From Octopus bimaculoides (Eukaryota), in assembly GCF_001194135.2 (NCBI RefSeq), contig NC_068983.1, forward strand, positions 37,078,807 to 37,142,806: a DNA stretch of 64,000 nt. Direction: 5' to 3'. Numbering within the stretch: position 1 is the stretch's first letter; each line of letters opens with the position of its first letter. The notes under the pieces were generated by a model. The model searched no databases. It saw nothing but the letters and a program-made list of their open reading frames with translations, and was not told the origin of the DNA. Positions 11,341 through 47,600 of this stretch are shown here, one piece after another. Made by a program: the position numbers and the translations under genes.

Positions 11341-11562
11341 NNNNNNNNNNNNNNNNNNNNNNNNNNNNNNNNNNNNNNNNNNNNNNNNNNNNNNNNNNNN
11401 NNNNNNNNNNNNNNNNNNNNNNNNNNNNNNNNNNNNNNNNNNNNNNNNNNNNNNNNNNNNNNNNNNNNNNNNNNNNNNNNNNNNNNNNNNNNNNNNNNNN
11501 NNNNNNNNNNNNNNNNNNNNNNNNNNNNNNNNNNNNNNNNNNNNNNNNNNNNNNNNNNNNNN
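11341..11562. other. Assembly gap of 222 N. Other gaps: 32929-32982, 36209-36218, 43379-43484, 56535-56544, 57553-57562.
   Basis: N runs. Confidence 1.
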
Positions 11563-21425: not shown

Positions 21426-21500
21426 CTGCAACCACTTGTTGATGGTTGGTCATCAGTAGTTTCACTGCTAAGGGATATACTTACACTACTAGAACTTCCC
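21426..21500 (-). CDS. per: per exon (GSSSSVSISLSSETTDDQPSTSGC)
   Basis: TTTTCAG|G acceptor and CAG|GTATGT donor. 75 nt, phase 2-2. Matches PER1 SEQDNPSTSGCSS. Confidence 0.92.
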
Positions 21501-29812: not shown

Positions 29813-29829
29813 CTCACAGTATCTTCCAT
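29813..29829 (-). CDS. per: Candidate per start exon B, coding part MEDTV(R); whole exon 29813-29956
   Basis: Acceptor CTTTTTTTCTCTTTCAG at 29957, AATATGG start context, in-frame upstream TAA at 29893-29895, and donor GAG|GTAAGT in phase 2. Confidence 0.5.
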
Positions 29830-32748
29830 ATTTGTGAAGAGAAAGTAGAAATGGACTTGGGATAACACAGATATAAGATCTTTAACAATAACTTAAGTAA
29901 ATAGTTGAATTTCGTAGGTGCCAGAATCAAACCAAGCAGGGAGACAGCTAAAAAAACTGAAAGAGAAAAAAAGTAACTTACAAATTGTTGTTAAAAGCTA
30001 AAAGCATAGGTATAAAAAAACAACATGTGTTTCAAAATGAAAATCATTTCAAGCTATGAGGAAAAAAATACCAAAATTCTCAGCTGACATTCTCATATAA
30101 TTTCAATAACAAATATAATTTAATAAATTGAATATTTTAAAACAAAACAGAATTTTGTATAAAAGCAAATCCAATATGCTCAAATCATATTAAACAAAAT
30201 AAATATTCTATTCAAATTCACTTCAGACTTTGACTAATTAACATAGAGAGTAAGAAATTTATATTTCTATCTATTTTTTTTTTATTCATTCCATGTTCAG
30301 TTCAAATTTTACCTCTAAATTATGGAATTTTTTTACATCCAACTGAATGTTTTTAAAAAAGTAACTTTGCATCTTAAACTTTCTCAGCTAATATACATGT
30401 CTTACAAATGCACAGATAAATTTCTAAATGTGGGAGGAGAGGGGATGAGACTATGTGATGTCCTTATTTTTAAGGGCATTAGAAGATAAATGAAATGAAA
30501 TAGTTCCAACAAAAGAATATAAACTGAAATGCAGACTCAGCAGTGTTTAAGTTGCTTTATAAATGTAATATTAAGAATAATCTATCATCAAACGGTTTAT
30601 CACAAGCCTAAGATTTATAAAAATAGCATGGCCAGTGTACATAAACTCTAATCATAATTACAACTTCATTAAAATGCTACATATCATTATCTAAACTATA
30701 ATAAAGCAAGTCTCTTATTAATTAGCTTAAAATATGTAAATTTTACTAAAAGAAAGCAATTATCAAAGTCTATATTGTCAAAGAAATTCTTATAAATTTC
30801 AATTTTAATATATTATAAAGGTTGCTTAATTATTTGCAACACTACTTTCTACATACACATCAGTAAAAGCATTTTGCCAAATTATGTTTAATCTAGCATC
30901 AGCAGAATTATGTTGATTCCAGTCTTTCATATTTGTTGGGTGTTGTTGAAGATGGTAACCTGAAGAATGTTACGTGGTCAAGTTAAGTCAAAATAATACC
31001 CGATTTCTTCATAAATTCTAATGCCGTATTTGAATGCTGGATATTATTCTGAATTTATTTACTGAATGAGTACTATTAGACAAAGGATACAAAGGAAAAT
31101 TAAATGTAACATATCAGAAAAATTACACAAATTGAGAAACAAATGTGTACATCTCATTTAGAAACTAGTAAAAATCTGCCGAAGGGCAGTTTTTCTGTAA
31201 GAGATAAAAATAAAGGAAACATTTTTCCTCCTAAATATTGATCACCCATTGTTTAGCCTAGGAGCATTTGAGAAGGTTGCCACCTAATAAACTAAGAAAA
31301 AAATTAAATATCAATAAAATTTATTGTAATTCAAAAATGTCACCAGTAGTGCATTAGAGGATTTAAATATTGTTATAAATATTGAGTGAAGGAAATACAT
31401 ACAACAACACACTACATGATAAAGTGTGCCATGGTGCTTATGACCAAATCTGAAGCATGGTATATGCAGAGTAGTGGACCTGTGAATTACTCTTGCATAT
31501 CTGAGCAGCTGTTATTGCTCTACCATAACACTATTGCTTCAGCACAGTTGAACAGGATGTATGCATACATGTATGTGCACTACAATGATGTAAACATACC
31601 AACAAAACCAATAAGTATTTAAAAACTTTGAGAGATGTGACATCTGATTTTAACTGTAAAACTCAAAGTAGATAAAGCTATAAGTAATAGCATGTAGAAT
31701 GTTGGGTTAAAAAAAACCCAGGAACCATAAAATGAGGAAAAAAAAAAAAAAAAGCCAAAGGCTACCAATGGGAGCTGAACTCATATCTGGGCAGCCTTTG
31801 ACTTTTTCTATCCAAAGCCTTTTTTTTTAATGCAGTATCCTACATGCTATCATTTATAGCTATATCTATTTTGAGTTCCACAGTTGAAATTGAATTATAC
31901 CAGCTAATGTGACTACATATAGAGAGAATAGGGTTAAGTGCAAGTTAATATACTTATTATTTCAGTTGAACAATAAGGAATAAATTAAATGAGATGAAAT
32001 AAAAATGATTTCTTACAAAATCAAATAATTTACAAGTCAATTTTTTGAGAAACAAACAACAAATTTTCTTTTTCTTTGTTTGAAATTTCAAATTATGCAT
32101 GAATTCAGAGTTTGCTTAATTGATCTGTGATCTTAAGGTTTATCTCCCTGCAAGGCATGTTGGACTTTTCTACTATAGCCTTCAGCTGACCTTGTGAATG
32201 AAATTGGTAGATGGACACTGTAAGGAAGCCTGTTGTGTGTGTGTGAGTATGTATGTTCATGTTGGTAAGGTCTGGACAGTCATCACAATCCAAGCTCTTG
32301 TTTTGAGTTCTGTCTTCTTGGGTGTGGTCCCCTGACCACACATAAAAGAACAGCAACCCAACAAGAACTTCTATCCATTTTCATTTGGAATATTTATGGC
32401 TGGGTACCTTTCCTAACACCAATTACTTAACCAGTGTACTGGGTGCATATTTTCATAGCACAAGCATAAGAGAAGTTGTCATGTTCTCCAAAATACAAGA
32501 CTAAAGAGTCCTTCTAAACCCTATAATGCTGTTGTACATCCAGCTTGTTAATTGTATGTATGAATAGTTATGTGTGTGAGCGTTTAGATTTCACATTCCA
32601 CAGAAAAAGCATTGAGTTAAAAAATGGTGTTGTTTGTTGGCATTTCCTGTCAATAAATCAGGTGTCTTTCAAAGATATTTGAAATAAAAGATCTCTTGCT
32701 TGAAATAGCAATGGAAAAAGTTTCTGATTCAAACGTATTTGAGTAACT

Positions 32749-33204
32749 CAGTGGTTCCCAAAGTGGGTGGCACCATCTTTGTGGAGCAGAAGAAAGGTCC
32801 AGAGGGGCACTGAAGAAAAATGGAGTGATAATAAAGGTGGCCCAAAAGTATCACTGGATGGCAATGACCCCTTTATTTTTCAATGGGATATTCAGGTTTA
32901 GAGAACAAAAATAAATAAAAATTAAAAANNNNNNNNNNNNNNNNNNNNNNNNNNNNNNNNNNNNNNNNNNNNNNNNNNNNNNTAAAAAGAAAAAAAAAAA
33001 ACTTTAGTGATGAAGCTGGCCATAAAACTCCCAAGAAAATTCCCTAGAAAGATGAAAACACGACACTGAACGAAAACAACAACAAGAATAACATCAACAA
33101 CAATGACAAGAAGAACAACAAAATGAAAAGAAAAAAATGAATACATTCCCTCCACTGACCATCTTTGATGCCAATGCCAAATACATGTGTATATGTAAGT
33201 GTAC

Positions 33205-33245
<41 letters not shown>

Positions 33246-33933
33246 AAGAATTTTTTTAAATTAAAGAAAAAATTGAATTAAGAAAAAACATCTATATTGC
33301 TTTTATACAAATATATAAGTATATGTAGGCTTGTGCACTTATGTTAGAAAACCTTGTAGGGTGGGGGGATTTTGGTTGGAGACTGGGGAAGTTTTAGGTA
33401 ATTTTTATGTGCTTGTTTAGGGTAAAACTGTAAAAATGCTTTTCTTTTTATGTATATTATGGGGATAGTTTATGATGGTGAAAGGAGTGAAGTTGGGGAG
33501 ATATTTTTTAACTGTCAAAAAAACAAAAAAAAAACAAAACAAAAAAACTATTGGTTATTTTTGATTAAAAATACCAGTTTTGGGTGGTATCTGGATATCA
33601 GTAATGAGTAAGCAAGAATAATCGAGGAACAACTGGTTTCAGTTTAAAAGGACATTGAGCTGTGTCCAAAGTTCAAAAAAATCATATCAGTATCTTTGAT
33701 TGCAAAAGGATGGTTCTGACTGCTACCCAGCACTGATGAACAAAGACAAAATGTACTTCTTGCTTTCTGCCTCGCTTCTTTCTAAGCAAAGGAGCAGACT
33801 GAAAATATTGTGAAACACAAGTTGTTTTTAATTTGTAGGAGAAAGAGGTCTATATTCGTGGGAAGGAGGGGATGCTAGGAATGTGGGTTGGGTACCAAGT
33901 GGGTAGCAATTTGAAAAAGTTTGGGAACCACTG
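32749..33933. mobile_element. hAT-type non-autonomous element
   Basis: Perfect 14-bp TIRs CAGTGGTTCCCAAA/TTTGGGAACCACTG. The 8-bp flanks GAGTAACT and GTCTAACT match at 6 of 8 positions. Confidence 0.75.
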
Positions 33934-33990
33934 GTCTAACTCATGCTAGCTTGGGAAAACGAGTGTTAAATGAAAGAACAAACTGTATAT

Positions 33991-34194
33991 ACTCTCTTAT
34001 TCTTTTACTTGTTTCAGTCATTTGACTGTGGCCATGCTGGAGTACCGCCTTTAGTCGAGCAAATCGACCTCAGGACTTATTCTTTGTAAGCCTAGTACTT
34101 ATTCTATTGGTCTCCTTTGTCGAACCACTAAGTTACAGGGATGAAAACACACCAGCATCAGTTGTCAAGCGATGTTGGGGAGACAAGCACATAT

Positions 34195-34233
<39 letters not shown>

Positions 34234-34393
34234 TATGACGAGCTTCTTTCAGTTTCCGTCTACCAAATCCACTCACAAGGGTTTGGTCGGCCTGAGGCTA
34301 TAGTAGAAGACACTTGCCCAAGGTGCCATGCAGTGGGACTGAACCCAGAACCATGTGGTTGGTAAGCAAGCTACTTACCACACAGCCACTCCT
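33991..34393 (-). mobile_element. Full-length SINE family 1
   Basis: Reverse complement of the 22424 and 62247 copies, with an internal (TA)n run. Confidence 0.9.
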
Positions 34394-34857
34394 ACAAAGT
34401 AAAATACAAACAGAGAGGATTGAACAAATATTTTTCTAATTTTTTTTTTATTGATTAAAATTTCTGTTTTAGAATCTCCACCCACCCATTCAACACTTTA
34501 AGGTCAAGAGGTTTTCTGTTAATTTAAGTATTTGAAATTTCAAACTGGGAAAAATCTGTATAAGACAAAAATTTCTGCAACTGATCATACTATCAAAAAT
34601 TAAATCAAAGAGTATCACTTTGACAATGTATATTATCATCACTGATGTTAGAATTTAATATCAAGAAAACTGGACAAAAATATACCTTATTTCACAATTA
34701 TCATGTTTGGGTTGGAACAATGTTATAATATACTTTTTACAACTTATACCAAGATGAAGGTTCCATACTGTCACCACCAGCTTGGCTTGATATAGTTCAA
34801 CTTAAATAAGGAAAGAAATTTTTTTTTTTTTCAGTATTGACCAAGAAAATGACTTAC

Positions 34858-34907
34858 CTTAGTGTTGATTCATGGGCCGAATCATAGAGAGAATTAACCT
34901 GTGCCAT
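34858..34907 (-). CDS. per: Candidate per start exon A, coding part MAQVNSLYDSAHESTL(R); whole exon 34858-34936
   Basis: Acceptor TTTATTTATTTTAG|GAT, GCCATGG start context, and consensus donor AAG|GTAAGT in phase 2. DSAH resembles the insect PER N-terminal DSAY motif. Confidence 0.65.
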
Positions 34908-37900
34908 GGCAAAACTGCCGACCAGTTGAGCTGATCCTAAAATAAATAAATTTAACAATATTACAAATTGTTGTCACAATTACTATTGTTATACAGATGA
35001 TTTACATGCAAGACTCATTTATATATTTATTTTTTATAATAATAAAAAGAAAAATTTTAGGATCTACTGTGTAGAAATTAATACAAAAATAAAAATAATA
35101 AATGCAGTATATTACAACACATTGTTGCTGATGAGTCCCAAGTTGGTCATGATTGAGTAGATCTATGATGAAAGACAGTCCAACTGTGAACATTCTGTCA
35201 TTTTAATGTGTGCAAGGAACCTAGGATTACATTATCCAATGTGTCCTTTCTAAGAGTATGATTTGAGAGGGATTTGGCTCTCACACCACAAAGGCTCCTA
35301 TGATAATGGATTAGGTTCAGTTTACTTCTAAGAAAACAGTTTTAACAGCTCAAAAACAACAAGAGTACATTCTAGATATAACTTTTATATGTGTTATAGG
35401 CAGGGTAGGCAAAGACATGGCTGCAAGAACAACACAATGCCTCCAGCTAAAAGTAAGTCACTAATTGTTAAGTATAGTGTTCAGCAGATCCCACAGTTAC
35501 AGTTCCAAATAATAGTCTGCATTAACTGAAAATAATAATAATATACAACAAAAACTGAGAAAGGTGGTCATTAACTAGTTATTATTCCTACTCTCTATGA
35601 ACCATCTTCAAAAGAAAAAGCCTAAGAATGACAGGTAAGACAAAAGAAAATCACTAATATACAGAGAAAAACTACATTGCAATTATTTTAAAGGGGTTTA
35701 AAAGAAACAAGAAAAGTTCCTGAATCCATTTTAATGATAGAGGATTACTATACATGTTTGTGTATAGGATGGAATTTATTAGCTCCTCTGATTTTGAATC
35801 ATGCTCCAGAATTAAGTCATCTTTAACACCTAATACAAAATCTGAACTATAATATTGCAGTTTATCCATCAATCAAGATAGAAGACAGTGTAAAACACTT
35901 GCTATGGTCCAACTGTTCAAAATTTTCAACTGAAACTTACAGAAAACCTGCCTCAATAAACTTGTCTCATCCTTGCAAGCATGGAGAAGTGATGTTAAAA
36001 TGATGATGATGATTACATTTGATTAAGAAAGCTAATTATATGAGCAGCCTTTAATTGCCAATGAGGGAGCCTCAACAAAATTAATGGCCTTGCTAGATAT
36101 AACAATAACATCTTTTCAAACCATATCCTCACTATCTAATGAAAGATGCATTGGACAATGTAGTCCATATAACTATGTTTGAAAAAAAAAAGAGAAAAAA
36201 AAAAAAAANNNNNNNNNNAAAAAAAAAAAAAAAGAGAAGCTTGTCATGGCTGGGTTTAACCCCCTGACCTGGGGTTAAAGAACAGCAGTAACTAAGAGAG
36301 AGTAAACTTCAACGCTATATTTAAGTTATGCCACATAACAAAACAAACTAGAACTATATAAAAACTTGATACACTACATAAATATTAACACGAATTTTTG
36401 CAGCAATTGTTTATCAGCTTTTTGCAGGAAAAAAACAAAACAATGATAAAATCAATTATCCAACATTCAGATGAATGTTTTGTGCATGAACATGAAGTCT
36501 TGCTGAGATGATTTTTGTGGTTAGTGCTAACAACAGATTCCTGTGGTGTAAACAATCTTTCATATTGTGGAAAAGGAATGGTACGTGTGTGTGTGAAAGA
36601 GTGAGGGGGAAGAGAGAAATGGCATGCACACACATACATATGTGTGTACACAGACAATTTAATGCTTGGTGGTGGTTTCTAATTAAACTGTGGAATATCC
36701 ATAGGGGTCAGCTAGCAAAATTAAGTTTTGTGAGACTTTTTGTCACACTAAGGTAAAATTTTATGCATGCAATTTACCTATATTATTCTAATAAGAATTG
36801 AAATCATAACTGAGCAGCTGTTAAAACTTGGGTTTTAACACAAACATTCTCACAGAAAAATGTACATCTTACATACAGCAAATGGATAATTTCATTTATA
36901 TATTTCCTCCAGTGTAAGGCTTAATAAACAAACTATAGATAATTTTTTTTTTTTTAAGTGATACAAAAATATGAGAATATATTTCAGATGATTCTGCAGG
37001 TCTAAATGTGCTTCTTTATCACCCTACTAATCTCCCATCATGTCACAAGTTAGAGGAATGGCATCACATTGGATCTGTCAGTATTCAACCCACACCTACT
37101 ATCATCCAGTTTTCTCTTGTTCCCACTCTTCCTCCAATCATGCATTATTGACATCCATCACTCCAGCTCTCTTACTTTCACCTACTTTTATCCATCATTA
37201 TCACTCAGTCATTCTCTCACCACTACTTCTGCTCATGCTGTTCTTATTTAATCTCCTTACAAACAACCAGCATTAAGTTATCACTTTCTTTACTATCTCT
37301 ATCTTTCACTCACTTTGGTTCTCCTTTAATCACTCTTCTACTTACCAAAGGACAAGACAACCCAGAGCTTCTAGTGGACAAATGAACACAGACAACATAA
37401 GACAGTGAAGGCTAATCTAGCAGACTAACACCGCAATGAACGTACACTCAGTACACGGTCCATGTCATTGTGGTCGGTCAATGACTGAAGACAACGTAAA
37501 GTAGGACACGATGACCTTTCTAGTGCTGATACCATAATAAAATGTACCCAGTAGGTTCTGTAAAATTGTTAGCAGTAAGAAGGATAACAGCCATAGAAAA
37601 TATCGTCAAAAATGGAATATACAAAATAGGGTCCCCCAATCTATCTAGAAGGCACTAACTGTGAATAACTGACTCAAAGCAGAATAACACACCCATCCAA
37701 TCCACAACAAAGACATGAAAGTGATGATGATGAAATTGTTATTATCATACCACACTGTATCAAATCTATCACAGAATATACTTTATAACAAAGGAATTTG
37801 CAGGGTTAACGGGACATAAGTTAAAAGTATAGAAGATGGTAATCTTAATTGCTCTTTCACCTGAGTACAGAATGTCAAAATTTATGAGTGATAGCAAAGA

Positions 37901-38860: not shown

Positions 38861-39090
38861 TTCTTTTATTCTTTTACTTGTTTCAGTCATTTGACTGCAG
38901 CCATGCTGCAGCACTGCCTTTAGTTGAACAAATTGATCTCAAAACTTATTCTTTGTAAGTCTAGTACTTATTCTATCAGTCTCTTTTGCTGAACCGCCAA
39001 GTCATGGGGACGTAAACACATCAGCATCAGTTGTCAAGCGATAGTGGAGGAAAACACAGACACAAACATACACACACACACACATACATA

Positions 39091-39133
<43 letters not shown>

Positions 39134-39290
39134 GACAGGCTTCTTTTAGTTTCCATCTACCAAATCCACTCACAAGGCTTTGGTCAGCCCAAGGCTATAG
39201 TAGAAGACATTTGCCCAAGGTGCCATGTAGTGGGACTGATCCCAGAACCATGTGGCTGGTAAGCAAGCTACTTACCACACAGTCACTCCT
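38861..39290 (-). mobile_element. Full-length SINE family 1
   Basis: Same head, core and tail, with internal (CA)n(TA)n. Confidence 0.9.
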
Positions 39291-44605: not shown

Positions 44606-47600
44606 TTGAAATGAGTTTCCAATTTGCAATTACTTTCAAACAAATTTTATAATCACAATATAGACTTGTGACAGTATAGGGTATTCACTTAATTCCTATA
44701 TTTGGTTACAAAATTTTCATTTTTCTTAAAGAGGGTTAAGGTAACAGAAACCATTATTAATGGAATATTTCTGAATACCTTTAAATAAATATGTAACTGG
44801 AATCTTTATAATATTCAAATCAATTCCTTTTTAAAAGATCAGTTAAGCACACACTGACATCCCAAGCAATTTCCCGTTGTGTAGATCAGTGCATTCAAGG
44901 ACTGGGAATGAGATTAAATTACACTGATTAGATTATATTTCCTCGGAAATAGGTTTCAATTTATTATATATATTATTGAATCCAATGTCTATAGAATTTC
45001 TCTATAACCCATGGTTTTCTTGCTCCAGCATATACATGCCTATCAATAAGAACAGCTAAATACATAATCTGATTTATACCAAAAGGCTGAAACCAATCAT
45101 TCGGCAAAATGGCTAATTAGTTGGTGTAACCATAGCTGCTTTATTACTTAAAATCCTACCTCTATACATAGTGGAAATGCTCAAGAAGAGATGACATTAG
45201 ACCACCAGATTATATCATTAGCCATTTCTTTATATCTTTCGAGAAAGTATATTCTACTTTGCTTCAATTTTGTTCTCTTTTTTTTATATCTCTTCTTTCT
45301 TGTAAAGCAATGTACAGAAAATGCTAATGTGAAATTAATGGACGTGGTGCAGAGGGGTGGGGAGTCTTTCAATGTGCTTGTTTTGAACGTATATCTGAAC
45401 ATGTGCTAACATCAACCATTAAGTGGTTGTGTATCAATCTTATTTTTTTCAGCTTTGGATACTCAGTTTCACATTAACCAAGGAATAAATACTAAACTAT
45501 TCATCCAAATAAATTAATGTAGTCAGACTATGCTCAAGTATTGCACTGTATTCTACATGTCTCAGTGAAGCTGAAGTGAAAATAATCATTACTGATGCTT
45601 CACTGAGCAGCTGGCATTAACTAAGATCTTTCATCCATAAATAACCAATATAAACACACATAGACACACACACCATTTGGCTGACATTAACTAAGATCCT
45701 TGAGCTATAAATAACCAGCATAAACAGGGAACAAGCACAACGGTCAAATGAACATGACATCAGTTCATTAGTTTATATATATATACCATTAGACAATTTT
45801 ATATCTGTGAAATTTTTTTTAAAAATAAAATAAAAGTTAATGCTTTCTTGACTTCAATTTAATAGTTAAGTAGACAGGCTCCAACTAATAACTTACAAAT
45901 TAACATTATGAATCCTATGAACTATTAAAGATCTGTAGCACAATATTTAAGTTAAATTAATCGAATAAAGGAGCTTCTAAATAGTTGCTCTAACAGTATT
46001 CATTATAGTAGTGAAATATCTTTTAAACTCAAAACTCAGGCATAACTGCGAGGCTAAGAAGTTTAATTCCCAATCACATGGTTTCATGTTCAATCCCACT
46101 GCAAGGCACCTTGGGAAGTGTCTACTTCCATAGCTCTGGGCTGACTAAAACCTTGTAAGTTTGGTAGAGGAAAACAAAGAGGCCCATTGCATATATATGT
46201 ATATATGTGTGCTTGGTGTGTGTTAGTGTCACTTTGCATCAGTATCAGACAAGCGAGAGTTGATGACATGAAGGACATCCGTCCATAGAAAATAGGCATC
46301 AACAAATTCTTGTCCAATCCATGCATAGACAGGTGGATGTCAAAATGATGACGACGACTATATTTCTGCACATCGTAGAAGAAAAATAATTAAAAAGGTG
46401 TTTAAAAGATTTCATTATGCAAATATCCATAAACAGTAGAAAAATTATCAATTTATTATTTTAAATCATTCATTTAGACAAGTCATCCCTTATTTCTTAC
46501 CAACAACAGCATTAATTAGAAAAAAGAAAACAAAGCAGCAAAAGTAAAGATATGTTTAAAAGCATTAGGTAACCATATGTAAATATCTAAACTGCAAGCA
46601 GGTGAGAGGAACCTTAATTACTTGGCTTCACAGAAGCAGGCAGAGAATCTAATCTACTTCAAGTCACAGCCTACCAATAACGGACAAGATAAAAAAAAAA
46701 AAATGTTGTTCTAGACATGCTAGGCTGAAAAAAAAAACCCATAGATTTGTTCTGTCAAGATCAATCAAGAAACGTTTGAAGTTCAACAACATAACATCCC
46801 ACAGTATAAATTTACAATTCAGCATCATTAAAATTACATGACAAACAGAATATGTTCAACCACAGTTCAGAACTGACTGAACACACCTATGATCAAATGT
46901 CTCCCAGCCATTACCAACCCTTCTTGTATTCAAGAATAGTGTAACTAAGACTACATTATTGAATATGTTCTTTTATTGTTGGGACAGTAGAATGTGATTT
47001 GTGGAAAGGGAGGGGGATTTGTTATTTTTAACAAGCCTAGCAACCACACAGATGCTTCATGTCGCTTGCTATTATTAATTGTCATGAACAGAAGTATATA
47101 TTGTAAATAAGAGACACCAATTAGCTACCATCATTGCATAAAAGAGTTTCTAAAATGCATCAAGGCAAAATGGTTCTCTATAATTTTAACTGTTAACAAA
47201 CAGACTAAGACTTCATCCTTAGAGCAAATATTTAAAATATTCTCCCTATAGCCAACAATGGTTGCTAATTAAAATTATTATTTTTATCTTCTAGTCAGGA
47301 TGGAAGGTATTCAATCAGCAAAAGTTTGATGAAATTTTAAATACCAGCCAGCACAAACTTTACAATAAAATATCAGTAAAGTATTTGATGGCATATAAGA
47401 AGCAGTTTTGTTTCAGAAAAAAAAAAAAAGTTTCAAAAATTCACACTGGGTCCTATAAGTTGGGATTCCCATAAGCTAAATTTGTCATAGACACTCATTT
47501 TTTCTTGAAAACTCACTGCTAAAATGGAGTGGGGTGGGTCTAATATGCCTGTTCGTCTTTTATCCCATCAAATACTATATATTTTGTTATAGAAAACACT

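Follow-up and report, generated by a model that had tools for sequence, protein, structure and literature searches.

A conserved cassette exon in cephalopod period as a probable start-codon switch for the clock protein PER

The DNA analysed here is a stretch of 64,000 nucleotides from Octopus bimaculoides (NC_068983.1, positions 37,078,807 to 37,142,806 of the forward strand; hereafter the window, in whose numbering all positions are given), which is 100% identical, gaps included, to chromosome CM046603.1 of assembly GCA_001194135.2. The minus strand of the window contains the 5' 60% of the period (PER) gene, and our analysis concerns two exons in this part of the gene, exon A and exon B, each of which provides a start codon for the PER protein. 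Searches with a cephalopod PER ortholog (tblastn) placed the PER exons, among them the PAS-A and PAS-B exons, between about 21.5 kb and 0.6 kb; together they account for the protein up to about residue 880, and the remainder of the gene lies beyond the window start. The N-terminal protein spliced from the window is identical to XP_014779392.2, annotated as 'period circadian protein homolog 1', which matches the Pfam family Period_C with 49 bits against a cutoff of 25. PAS matches of the same protein are weak because a stretch of 26 amino acids is lost in an assembly gap (11341-11562); its orthologs, which were recovered by an exhaustive search of representative proteins and by a profile combining the window model with one ortholog, carry PAS_3, PAS_11 and Period_C. 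In addition, the motif QPSTSGC|SS straddles the junction of exons 2 and 3, and the same motif is present in the mollusc, annelid and fish PER proteins retrieved in our searches. Judged by both the Period_C and PAS matches and the N-terminal PSTSGCSS motif, the window gene can be identified as the gene of the PERIOD clock protein. The gap at 11341-11562 removes part of the PAS-B/PAC coding region, and the 26 residues absent from XP_014779392.2 (VVSTQGFRFKSEPYRLRTRNQSWVYV) are present in the PER proteins of O. sinensis and O. vulgaris. In an older annotation the gene appeared as two, XP_014779387.1 (364 aa) and XP_014779392.1 (999 aa, named 'serine-rich adhesin for platelets-like').

Exon A (34936-34858, minus strand) is an internal exon with its own acceptor (AG at 34938-34937) and has orthologs in Sepia and in a second decapodiform species. 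Its start codon (34907-34905) lies in the context GCCATGG and its donor is AAG|GTAAGT in phase 2, so that it encodes MAQVNSLYDSAHESTL followed by the two bases AG, a protein sequence matching XP_014779392.2. Exon B (29956-29813, minus strand) is a cassette of 144 nt located between a CAG acceptor ending at 29957, which follows a pyrimidine run, and a GAG|GTAAGT donor, also in phase 2. The 5' boundary of exon B in octopus was set by homology to the Sepia junction, and a second AG located 9 nt downstream of this acceptor would preserve the same frame. The start codon of exon B (ACAAATATGG; 29829-29827, minus strand) has the context AATATGG and opens the short frame MEDTV plus AG, which is in frame with exon 2. 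Exon 2 (21500-21426, minus strand) follows TTTCAG, begins and ends in phase 2, encodes (R)GSSSSVSISLSSETTDDQPSTSGC and is shared by the two forms. Exon 3 (20679-20513, minus strand) encodes (S)SMHVTGNEF...KKLK and completes TSGCSS across its junction with exon 2.

Re-reading of these boundaries in the sequence bears out the original prediction in its details, namely the GCCATGG and AATATGG start contexts, the phase-2 GTAAGT donors of both exons and their in-frame joining to the exon at 21500. From either exon the junction codon AG+G gives R, which is followed by GSSSSVSISL..., and the predicted difference of 11 amino acids between the two N-termini was recovered as 17 residues ahead of GSSSS in the exon A form and 6 in the exon B form. 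Both AUGs have a purine at position -3 and G at +4. Two other features were seen around exon 2. An internal GTAAGT is present inside the exon at 21484-21479 (AGT AGT|GTAAGT), with GTGAGC at the same place in Sepia, and no transcript or protein model uses the octopus GTAAGT as a donor. The O. vulgaris model CAI9720318 starts with MKLFCDSIFLSVIF..., which corresponds to an intronic open reading frame (ORF) running into exon 2, and the same ORF is present in the window (21592-21501, minus strand); this start looks like an ab initio start-codon artefact and not like a third isoform.

Both N-termini are found in public annotation. The form MAQ(V/I)(N/S)SLYDSAHESTLR-GSSSS is annotated in O. bimaculoides (XP_014779392.2), in O. 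sinensis (isoforms X1 and X2) and in O. vulgaris, and cluster look-ups gave the exon A form also for O. bimaculoides XP_014779387.1 and for Sepia pharaonis. The form MEDTVR-GSSSS appears as UniRef A0A0L8GNN8 for O. bimaculoides and as isoform X3 for O. sinensis; the O. sinensis isoforms X1 (XP_029633044.1) and X3 (XP_036357375.1) differ at the N-terminus alone, by 11 amino acids. As far as the existence of two N-termini goes, public annotation thus already contains the finding. Octopus records agree with our analysis in showing the MAQ...STLR-GSSSS and MEDTVR-GSSSS N-termini, but they present proteins only, and neither the order of exon A and exon B in one transcript, nor a conserved upstream ORF at the exon A ATG, nor the sharing of this arrangement with decapodiforms is recorded there. 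A literature search found no paper on this period exon arrangement in cephalopods.

Exon B could in principle be a functionless chance match of an intronic ATG with a donor. The combination of ATG, open frame and phase-2 GTAAGT occurs 3 times on the minus strand between 36000 and 21500, compared to 0.93 +/- 1.16 times in dinucleotide shuffles of the interval, 10% of which contain three or more cases. On its own, the pattern is not beyond chance, and about 0.9 such motifs are expected in the interval. The third case (30007-29982, minus strand; MLLAFNNN with a phase-2 GTAAGT) was examined and rejected as a chance look-alike and not an exon, its GTAAGT being lost in O. sinensis. It is thus homology and transcripts, and not the motif, that establish exon B as real. 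Against a chance match, the sequence and position of exon B are conserved in O. sinensis, in two Sepia species and in a further decapodiform, the exon is spliced into transcripts in 15 runs, and it is present in the RefSeq isoform X3. These transcript and conservation data refute the chance-match explanation, to which we give practically no weight.

The transcript evidence comes from Logan contigs assembled from public RNA-seq runs. A PER protein of 1530 aa starting with MEDTLRGSASS is encoded by 13 Sepia contigs from 13 runs, and in all 13 the homolog of exon A (GCCATGGCGGAAAC...AATAAG) is followed by a 140-nt exon B and then by exon 2. A PER protein of 1544 aa starting with MAETGEFSDSAFGSSSIVIRGSASS (MAETGEF-PER) is encoded by contigs in which exon A is spliced directly to exon 2 (10/10 contigs checked at the junction); three further contigs encode the MAETGEF N-terminus, bringing the total to 13. 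The Sepia PER proteins are identical across runs, and several contigs of each form have the same 5' untranslated region (UTR) as contig L002, with zero mismatches over 100-590 nt upstream of exon A. Papers on Sepia esculenta name six of the Sepia runs: SRR19578103, SRR19578105, SRR31864755-57 (PRJNA844162) and SRR20545808. In the genome of S. pharaonis the pieces of these transcripts align in the order exon 1, exon A, exon B, exon 2, and their splice sites are the canonical AG and GT. The sites of exon B are TTTCAG|exon B|GTAAGT, and the layout is similar to that of octopus, the intron between exons A and B being 4.5 kb long in S. pharaonis and 4.9 kb in octopus. Exon A is also spliced to exon B in the second decapodiform species (runs SRR27666065 and SRR24189490), so that exon A is directly upstream of exon B in 15 of the 15 decapodiform contigs that contain exon B (13 from Sepia and 2 from the second species). 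Contigs of the second decapodiform (L001, positions 236-289, and L024) contain an extra 54-nt in-frame exon C (MSGKRCISLASTSKTPQ) between exon B and exon 2, giving MDDTLR-MSGKR...-GGSASS. No homolog of exon C was found in the octopus window or at the S. pharaonis locus, and we treat it as probably lineage-specific.

These contigs bear directly on what kind of exon B is. Both its acceptor and its donor are present, the Sepia inclusion and skipping forms have identical exons A and 2, and the splice sites are conserved in octopus, where the exon B sequences of O. bimaculoides and O. sinensis are 98.6% identical. Because it is internal in 15/15 contigs and the Sepia forms share their first exon, exon B is, in decapodiforms, a cassette that is skipped or included and not an alternative first exon. 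Both splice forms are assembled from Sepia RNA-seq, and both exons are conserved in other cephalopods (O. sinensis, two Sepia species and the further decapodiform). The original prediction of two start exons encoding different PER N-termini consequently stands in one respect and falls in another: both exons exist, are annotated and are conserved, but exon B does not serve as an alternative first exon in decapodiforms (15/15 contigs). By extension from the decapodiform junctions, octopus mRNAs with exon B would be expected to contain exon A as well.

The alternative that exons A and B are mutually exclusive first coding exons, each with its own promoter and leading to two differently regulated PER isoforms, had been suggested by the earlier mention of different promoters. 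Both O. bimaculoides (A0A0L8GNN8) and O. sinensis (X3) do have protein models that start with MEDTVR, and an extra internal start site in octopus is possible. In the decapodiforms, however, exons A and B co-occur in one mRNA, exon A being spliced upstream of exon B in every contig with exon B, and in Sepia both forms begin with the same 5' UTR exon 1. Octopus exon B itself has a strong conserved acceptor, consisting of the pyrimidine run and CAG, at the position homologous to that of Sepia, as suits an internal exon. Promoter hints were also sought near exon B (about 30 kb): there is no E-box CACGTG and no CpG enrichment, which is a weak argument and uninformative in an AT-rich genome. We consider separate first exons unlikely.

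Inclusion of exon B changes the reading of the exon A start codon. When exon B is present, the exon A frame runs for 21 codons into it and stops at a TAA 64 nt from its beginning (29895-29893, minus strand), which gives an ORF of 37 codons in octopus, MAQVNSLYDSAHESTLSFFSCLPAWFDSGTYEIQLFT*. Therefore, in mRNAs with the order A-B-2, the exon A AUG heads an upstream ORF of 37-41 codons which ends 56-63 nt before the exon B AUG. The length of this ORF is 37 codons in O. bimaculoides, 37 in O. sinensis, 41 in Sepia and 40 in the second decapodiform. The stop is at the same aligned position in all four species, the sole indel in the ORF tail being of 3 nt, and the distance from the stop to the second ATG is 63, 63, 56 and 63 nt, respectively. 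The length of exon B varies (144, 140 and 147 nt) and its frame relative to exon A is not preserved, while the stretch between the second ATG and the donor always measures 17 nt, so the frame of exon 2 is preserved. Read-through of the octopus TAA, which would produce a continuous A-B-2 frame (exon B being 144 nt long with one stop in both Octopus species), was considered and set aside, as exon B is 140 nt long in Sepia and has two stops in the second decapodiform; the single-stop open frame in octopus is probably a coincidence.

Conservation within exon B is unevenly distributed. Between O. bimaculoides and S. pharaonis, identity is 47% in 200 nt of the upstream intron, rises to 83% in the tail of the upstream ORF, falls to 35% in the middle of exon B (43 nt), rises again to 82% in the region of the second ATG and is 39% in the downstream intron. 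Exon B thus contains two separate islands under constraint, one comprising the ORF tail with its stop and the other the new start codon. The ORF tails of octopus (FFSCLPAWFDSGTYEIQLFT) and Sepia (FFSWPSAWLDSGTYQVQLIT) align over 21 codons. Changes in this small sample of 21 codons fall 5, 1 and 5 times on codon positions 1, 2 and 3, and of the nine changed codons 2 are synonymous and 7 non-synonymous (7/9).

Based on these observations, we propose that cephalopod period has, in its 5' part, a conserved cassette exon, exon B, which probably works as a start-codon switch. In mRNAs that skip exon B (A to 2), translation would begin at the strong exon A AUG and produce PER with its ancestral N-terminus, including a DSxxxS motif described below. 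When exon B is included (A-B-2), the exon A AUG would become the head of the upstream ORF of 37-41 codons ending at the conserved stop, and the exon B AUG, 56-63 nt past this stop, would be the only one left for making PER, by reinitiation or leaky scanning. The resulting protein would begin with MEDTVR and have no DSxxxS segment. According to the rules of scanning, most ribosomes should start at an exon A AUG having a purine at -3 and G at +4. As both AUGs have this context, inclusion would be expected to lower the PER output per mRNA, in addition to changing the N-terminus, and both splice forms would arise from the same promoter. Reinitiation at the exon B AUG and the effects on the amount and stability of PER are what we infer from this arrangement.

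The main rival of the start-codon switch is that exon B is purely a 'poison' exon, which introduces a premature stop and leads to nonsense-mediated decay or to an untranslated mRNA, with MEDTVR-PER as a by-product of annotation. Several features fit such a role: the exon A AUG has a strong context, many exon junctions follow far downstream of the stop, and a long upstream ORF is separated from the second ATG by a short spacing. Unproductive splicing is moreover found in other clock genes, for example in the tim-M isoform of Drosophila (PMC12049834). A pure poison exon does not account well, however, for the conservation between octopus and decapodiforms of the second ATG, together with its context and the 17 nt that separate it from the donor, when the 43 nt ahead of it are not conserved (82% against 35%), nor for the preservation of the exon 2 frame despite the changing length of exon B. 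Nor would an efficiently degraded mRNA be expected to supply the assembled, and probably the major, path in 13 Sepia runs, as the included form does. We therefore regard a pure poison exon as rather improbable, although less so than separate first exons.

Several points nevertheless weigh against the start-codon switch. An ORF of 37-41 codons followed by about 60 nt is poor for reinitiation, and the included form might give little PER and act mainly through mRNA decay. The substitutions in the ORF tail are weakly coding-like, so that the constraint could be on the RNA, for example on splicing enhancers. The octopus A-to-B junction and the exact acceptor of exon B are inferred from decapodiform transcripts and not from octopus ones. 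Finally, a Logan contig represents one assembly path per run and shows the existence of a junction, not proportions.

The two forms differ in a motif of potential relevance to PER stability. About 30 residues ahead of PSTSGCSS, exon A encodes a motif of the form DS-x-(Y/F/H)-x-S, which reads DSAHES in octopus and DSAFGS in Sepia. Bivalve and gastropod PER proteins have DS[TNSC]YGS at the same distance upstream of PSTSGCSS, and a similar DS(G/A)Y(S/G) motif is present near the N-terminus of insect PER. Since its DSxxxS motif matches that of bivalve and gastropod PER in sequence and in distance from PSTSGCSS, exon A can be taken, from comparison of the proteins, as the ancestral PER start exon. 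In the exon B form the DSxxxS motif is missing and the segment is replaced by MEDTV. A phosphodegron of the beta-TrCP/SLIMB type has the form D-pS-G-x-x-pS and is bound by the F-box protein. In the spacing of its serines the DSxxxS of exon A resembles such a DSGxxS degron, with the G being replaced, and we take this as a resemblance only. The original prediction had raised the idea that the isoforms might differ in CK1 priming or stability, for which the conserved DSxxxS in exon A, lacking in the exon B form, provides one concrete basis.

A longer PER form had also been considered possible, as the exon A frame is open upstream of its ATG. This frame is indeed open back to the acceptor (xSAQLVGSFA-M), and the O. 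vulgaris model CAI9720316 starts with MSVKPR-SAQLVGSFA-MAQISS, which corresponds to an upstream exon joined to the open frame of exon A. In O. sinensis the upstream exon (L023, positions 2282-2297) reads ATG TCT GTG AAG CCA A|GTAATT, matching the MSVKPR of CAI9720316. Alignment to the same O. sinensis sequence located the 3' end of a candidate upstream 5' UTR exon in the window (46622..46670, minus strand; last base 46622, donor GTAATT). In this O. bimaculoides ortholog ending at 46622 (46622-46640), GCT replaces ATG and an in-frame TGA is present upstream. Through the one upstream exon identified, the longer form is accordingly not available to O. bimaculoides, whose copy has no ATG and has the upstream TGA. 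The two species thus differ in their potential for an N-terminally extended PER, with ATG in O. sinensis against GCT in O. bimaculoides. A BLAST comparison of the Sepia 5' UTR exon 1 to the window gave one short match, on the wrong strand. We propose the exon found through O. sinensis and O. vulgaris as a candidate exon 1 of the octopus gene that may be used in O. bimaculoides.

Whether a given Sepia run yields the included or the skipped form varies among samples. The assembled isoform (contigs L002-L021 and L025-L030) clusters by sequencing series: exon B is skipped in 7/7 contigs of SRR82816xx and included in 2/2 of SRR239361xx, while SRR251581xx gave 3 skipped and 5 included. It is included in 3/3 contigs of SRR318647xx, which by accession order are apparently the 28 degrees C copper group of PRJNA844162, a Sepia esculenta series comparing 20.5 and 28 degrees C at 0, 4 and 24 h. 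This distribution suggests that inclusion of exon B in Sepia depends on condition or tissue, within the limits of contigs that are not quantitative. No link between exon B inclusion and high temperature could be established in Sepia, as the assignment of runs to treatments is not given and the contigs are non-quantitative. As the form that is assembled in Sepia changes with the sample, the choice of splice form looks like regulation and not like noise. It is tempting to extend the start-codon switch accordingly, and we offer tentatively, as a possibility to which we attach less than even weight, that exon B inclusion is regulated, for instance according to tissue, temperature or time of day. 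Such a switch would have been kept since the split of octopus and decapodiforms, and would select between the ancestral PER on the one hand and, on the other, an upstream ORF encoding a conserved peptide together with a degron-poor MEDTVR-PER made by reinitiation.

The intron between exons A and B contains an assembly gap (32929..32982) in a T-rich low-complexity run, which is also present in the chromosome-level assembly GCA_001194135.2. No coding frame crosses this gap. In the ungapped O. sinensis locus its flanks meet directly in the T-rich run, and in cuttlefish transcripts exon A abuts exon B with nothing between. Being intronic, with no reading frame across it, with its flanks joined directly in O. 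sinensis and with no insert in the cuttlefish mRNAs, the gap leaves the finding of the two exons unaffected. Introns and flanks of the window further contain many copies of a dispersed repeat on both strands (for example at 62482-62177, 54423-54094, 39044-39262, 34141-34365, 22636-22385 and 7480-7280). It combines a TG/CA-type microsatellite with a recurring pseudo-ORF (…FGRPEAIVEDTCPRCHAVGLNPEPCGW…), cross-matches within the O. sinensis locus and is probably a SINE-like element.

Among known clock systems, the closest functional analogue of the exon B arrangement would be frq of Neurospora, in which splicing around the first AUG selects l-FRQ or s-FRQ (PMC10140173, PMC6829141). As proposed for octopus period, splicing there picks the AUG of a core clock repressor, and the FRQ forms differ by an N-terminal segment, in phosphorylation and in stability (PMC10140173, PMC6829141). 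The means are different, since frq removes an intron with the first AUG, whereas period would insert a cassette exon which terminates the first frame and provides an AUG of its own. The two proteins, FRQ and PER, are also unrelated, and temperature dependence is not part of the period case as seen here. Upstream ORFs are found in the leaders of mouse Per2 (PMC10556633) and Drosophila Clk (PMC12121920), where, as in period, an ORF lies ahead of the main start of a clock gene and is expected to lower translation. The upstream ORFs of Per2 and Clk are constitutive in the leader, in contrast to that of period, which is confined to one splice form and begins at the PER AUG of the other. Drosophila timeless has the alternative starts of L-TIM and S-TIM and the unproductive isoform tim-M (PMC12049834). 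It would resemble the arrangement proposed for period in that a short N-terminal difference has a functional effect and in that splicing lowers the pool of productive clock mRNA, but ls-tim is an allelic difference and not a splicing choice, and tim-M is retention of an intron in the middle of the mRNA. The architecture as a whole, a cassette exon with a conserved upstream ORF and a shared promoter, appears to be undescribed.

Clock mechanisms beyond flies, mammals and fungi are poorly known, and our literature search turned up no publication on the post-transcriptional control of period in cephalopods. In the model proposed here, an optional conserved exon would decide whether the ancestral start codon yields PER or a short peptide, and the same exon would decide whether PER keeps its serine motif beside the serine-rich tract and TSGCSS. 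For annotators the locus is a warning that an 'alternative N-terminus' may conceal an upstream ORF arrangement. If exon B is indeed a regulated switch, cephalopod period would provide a case of splicing-coupled translational control of a core clock repressor in a lophotrochozoan, analogous to that of frq but built differently.

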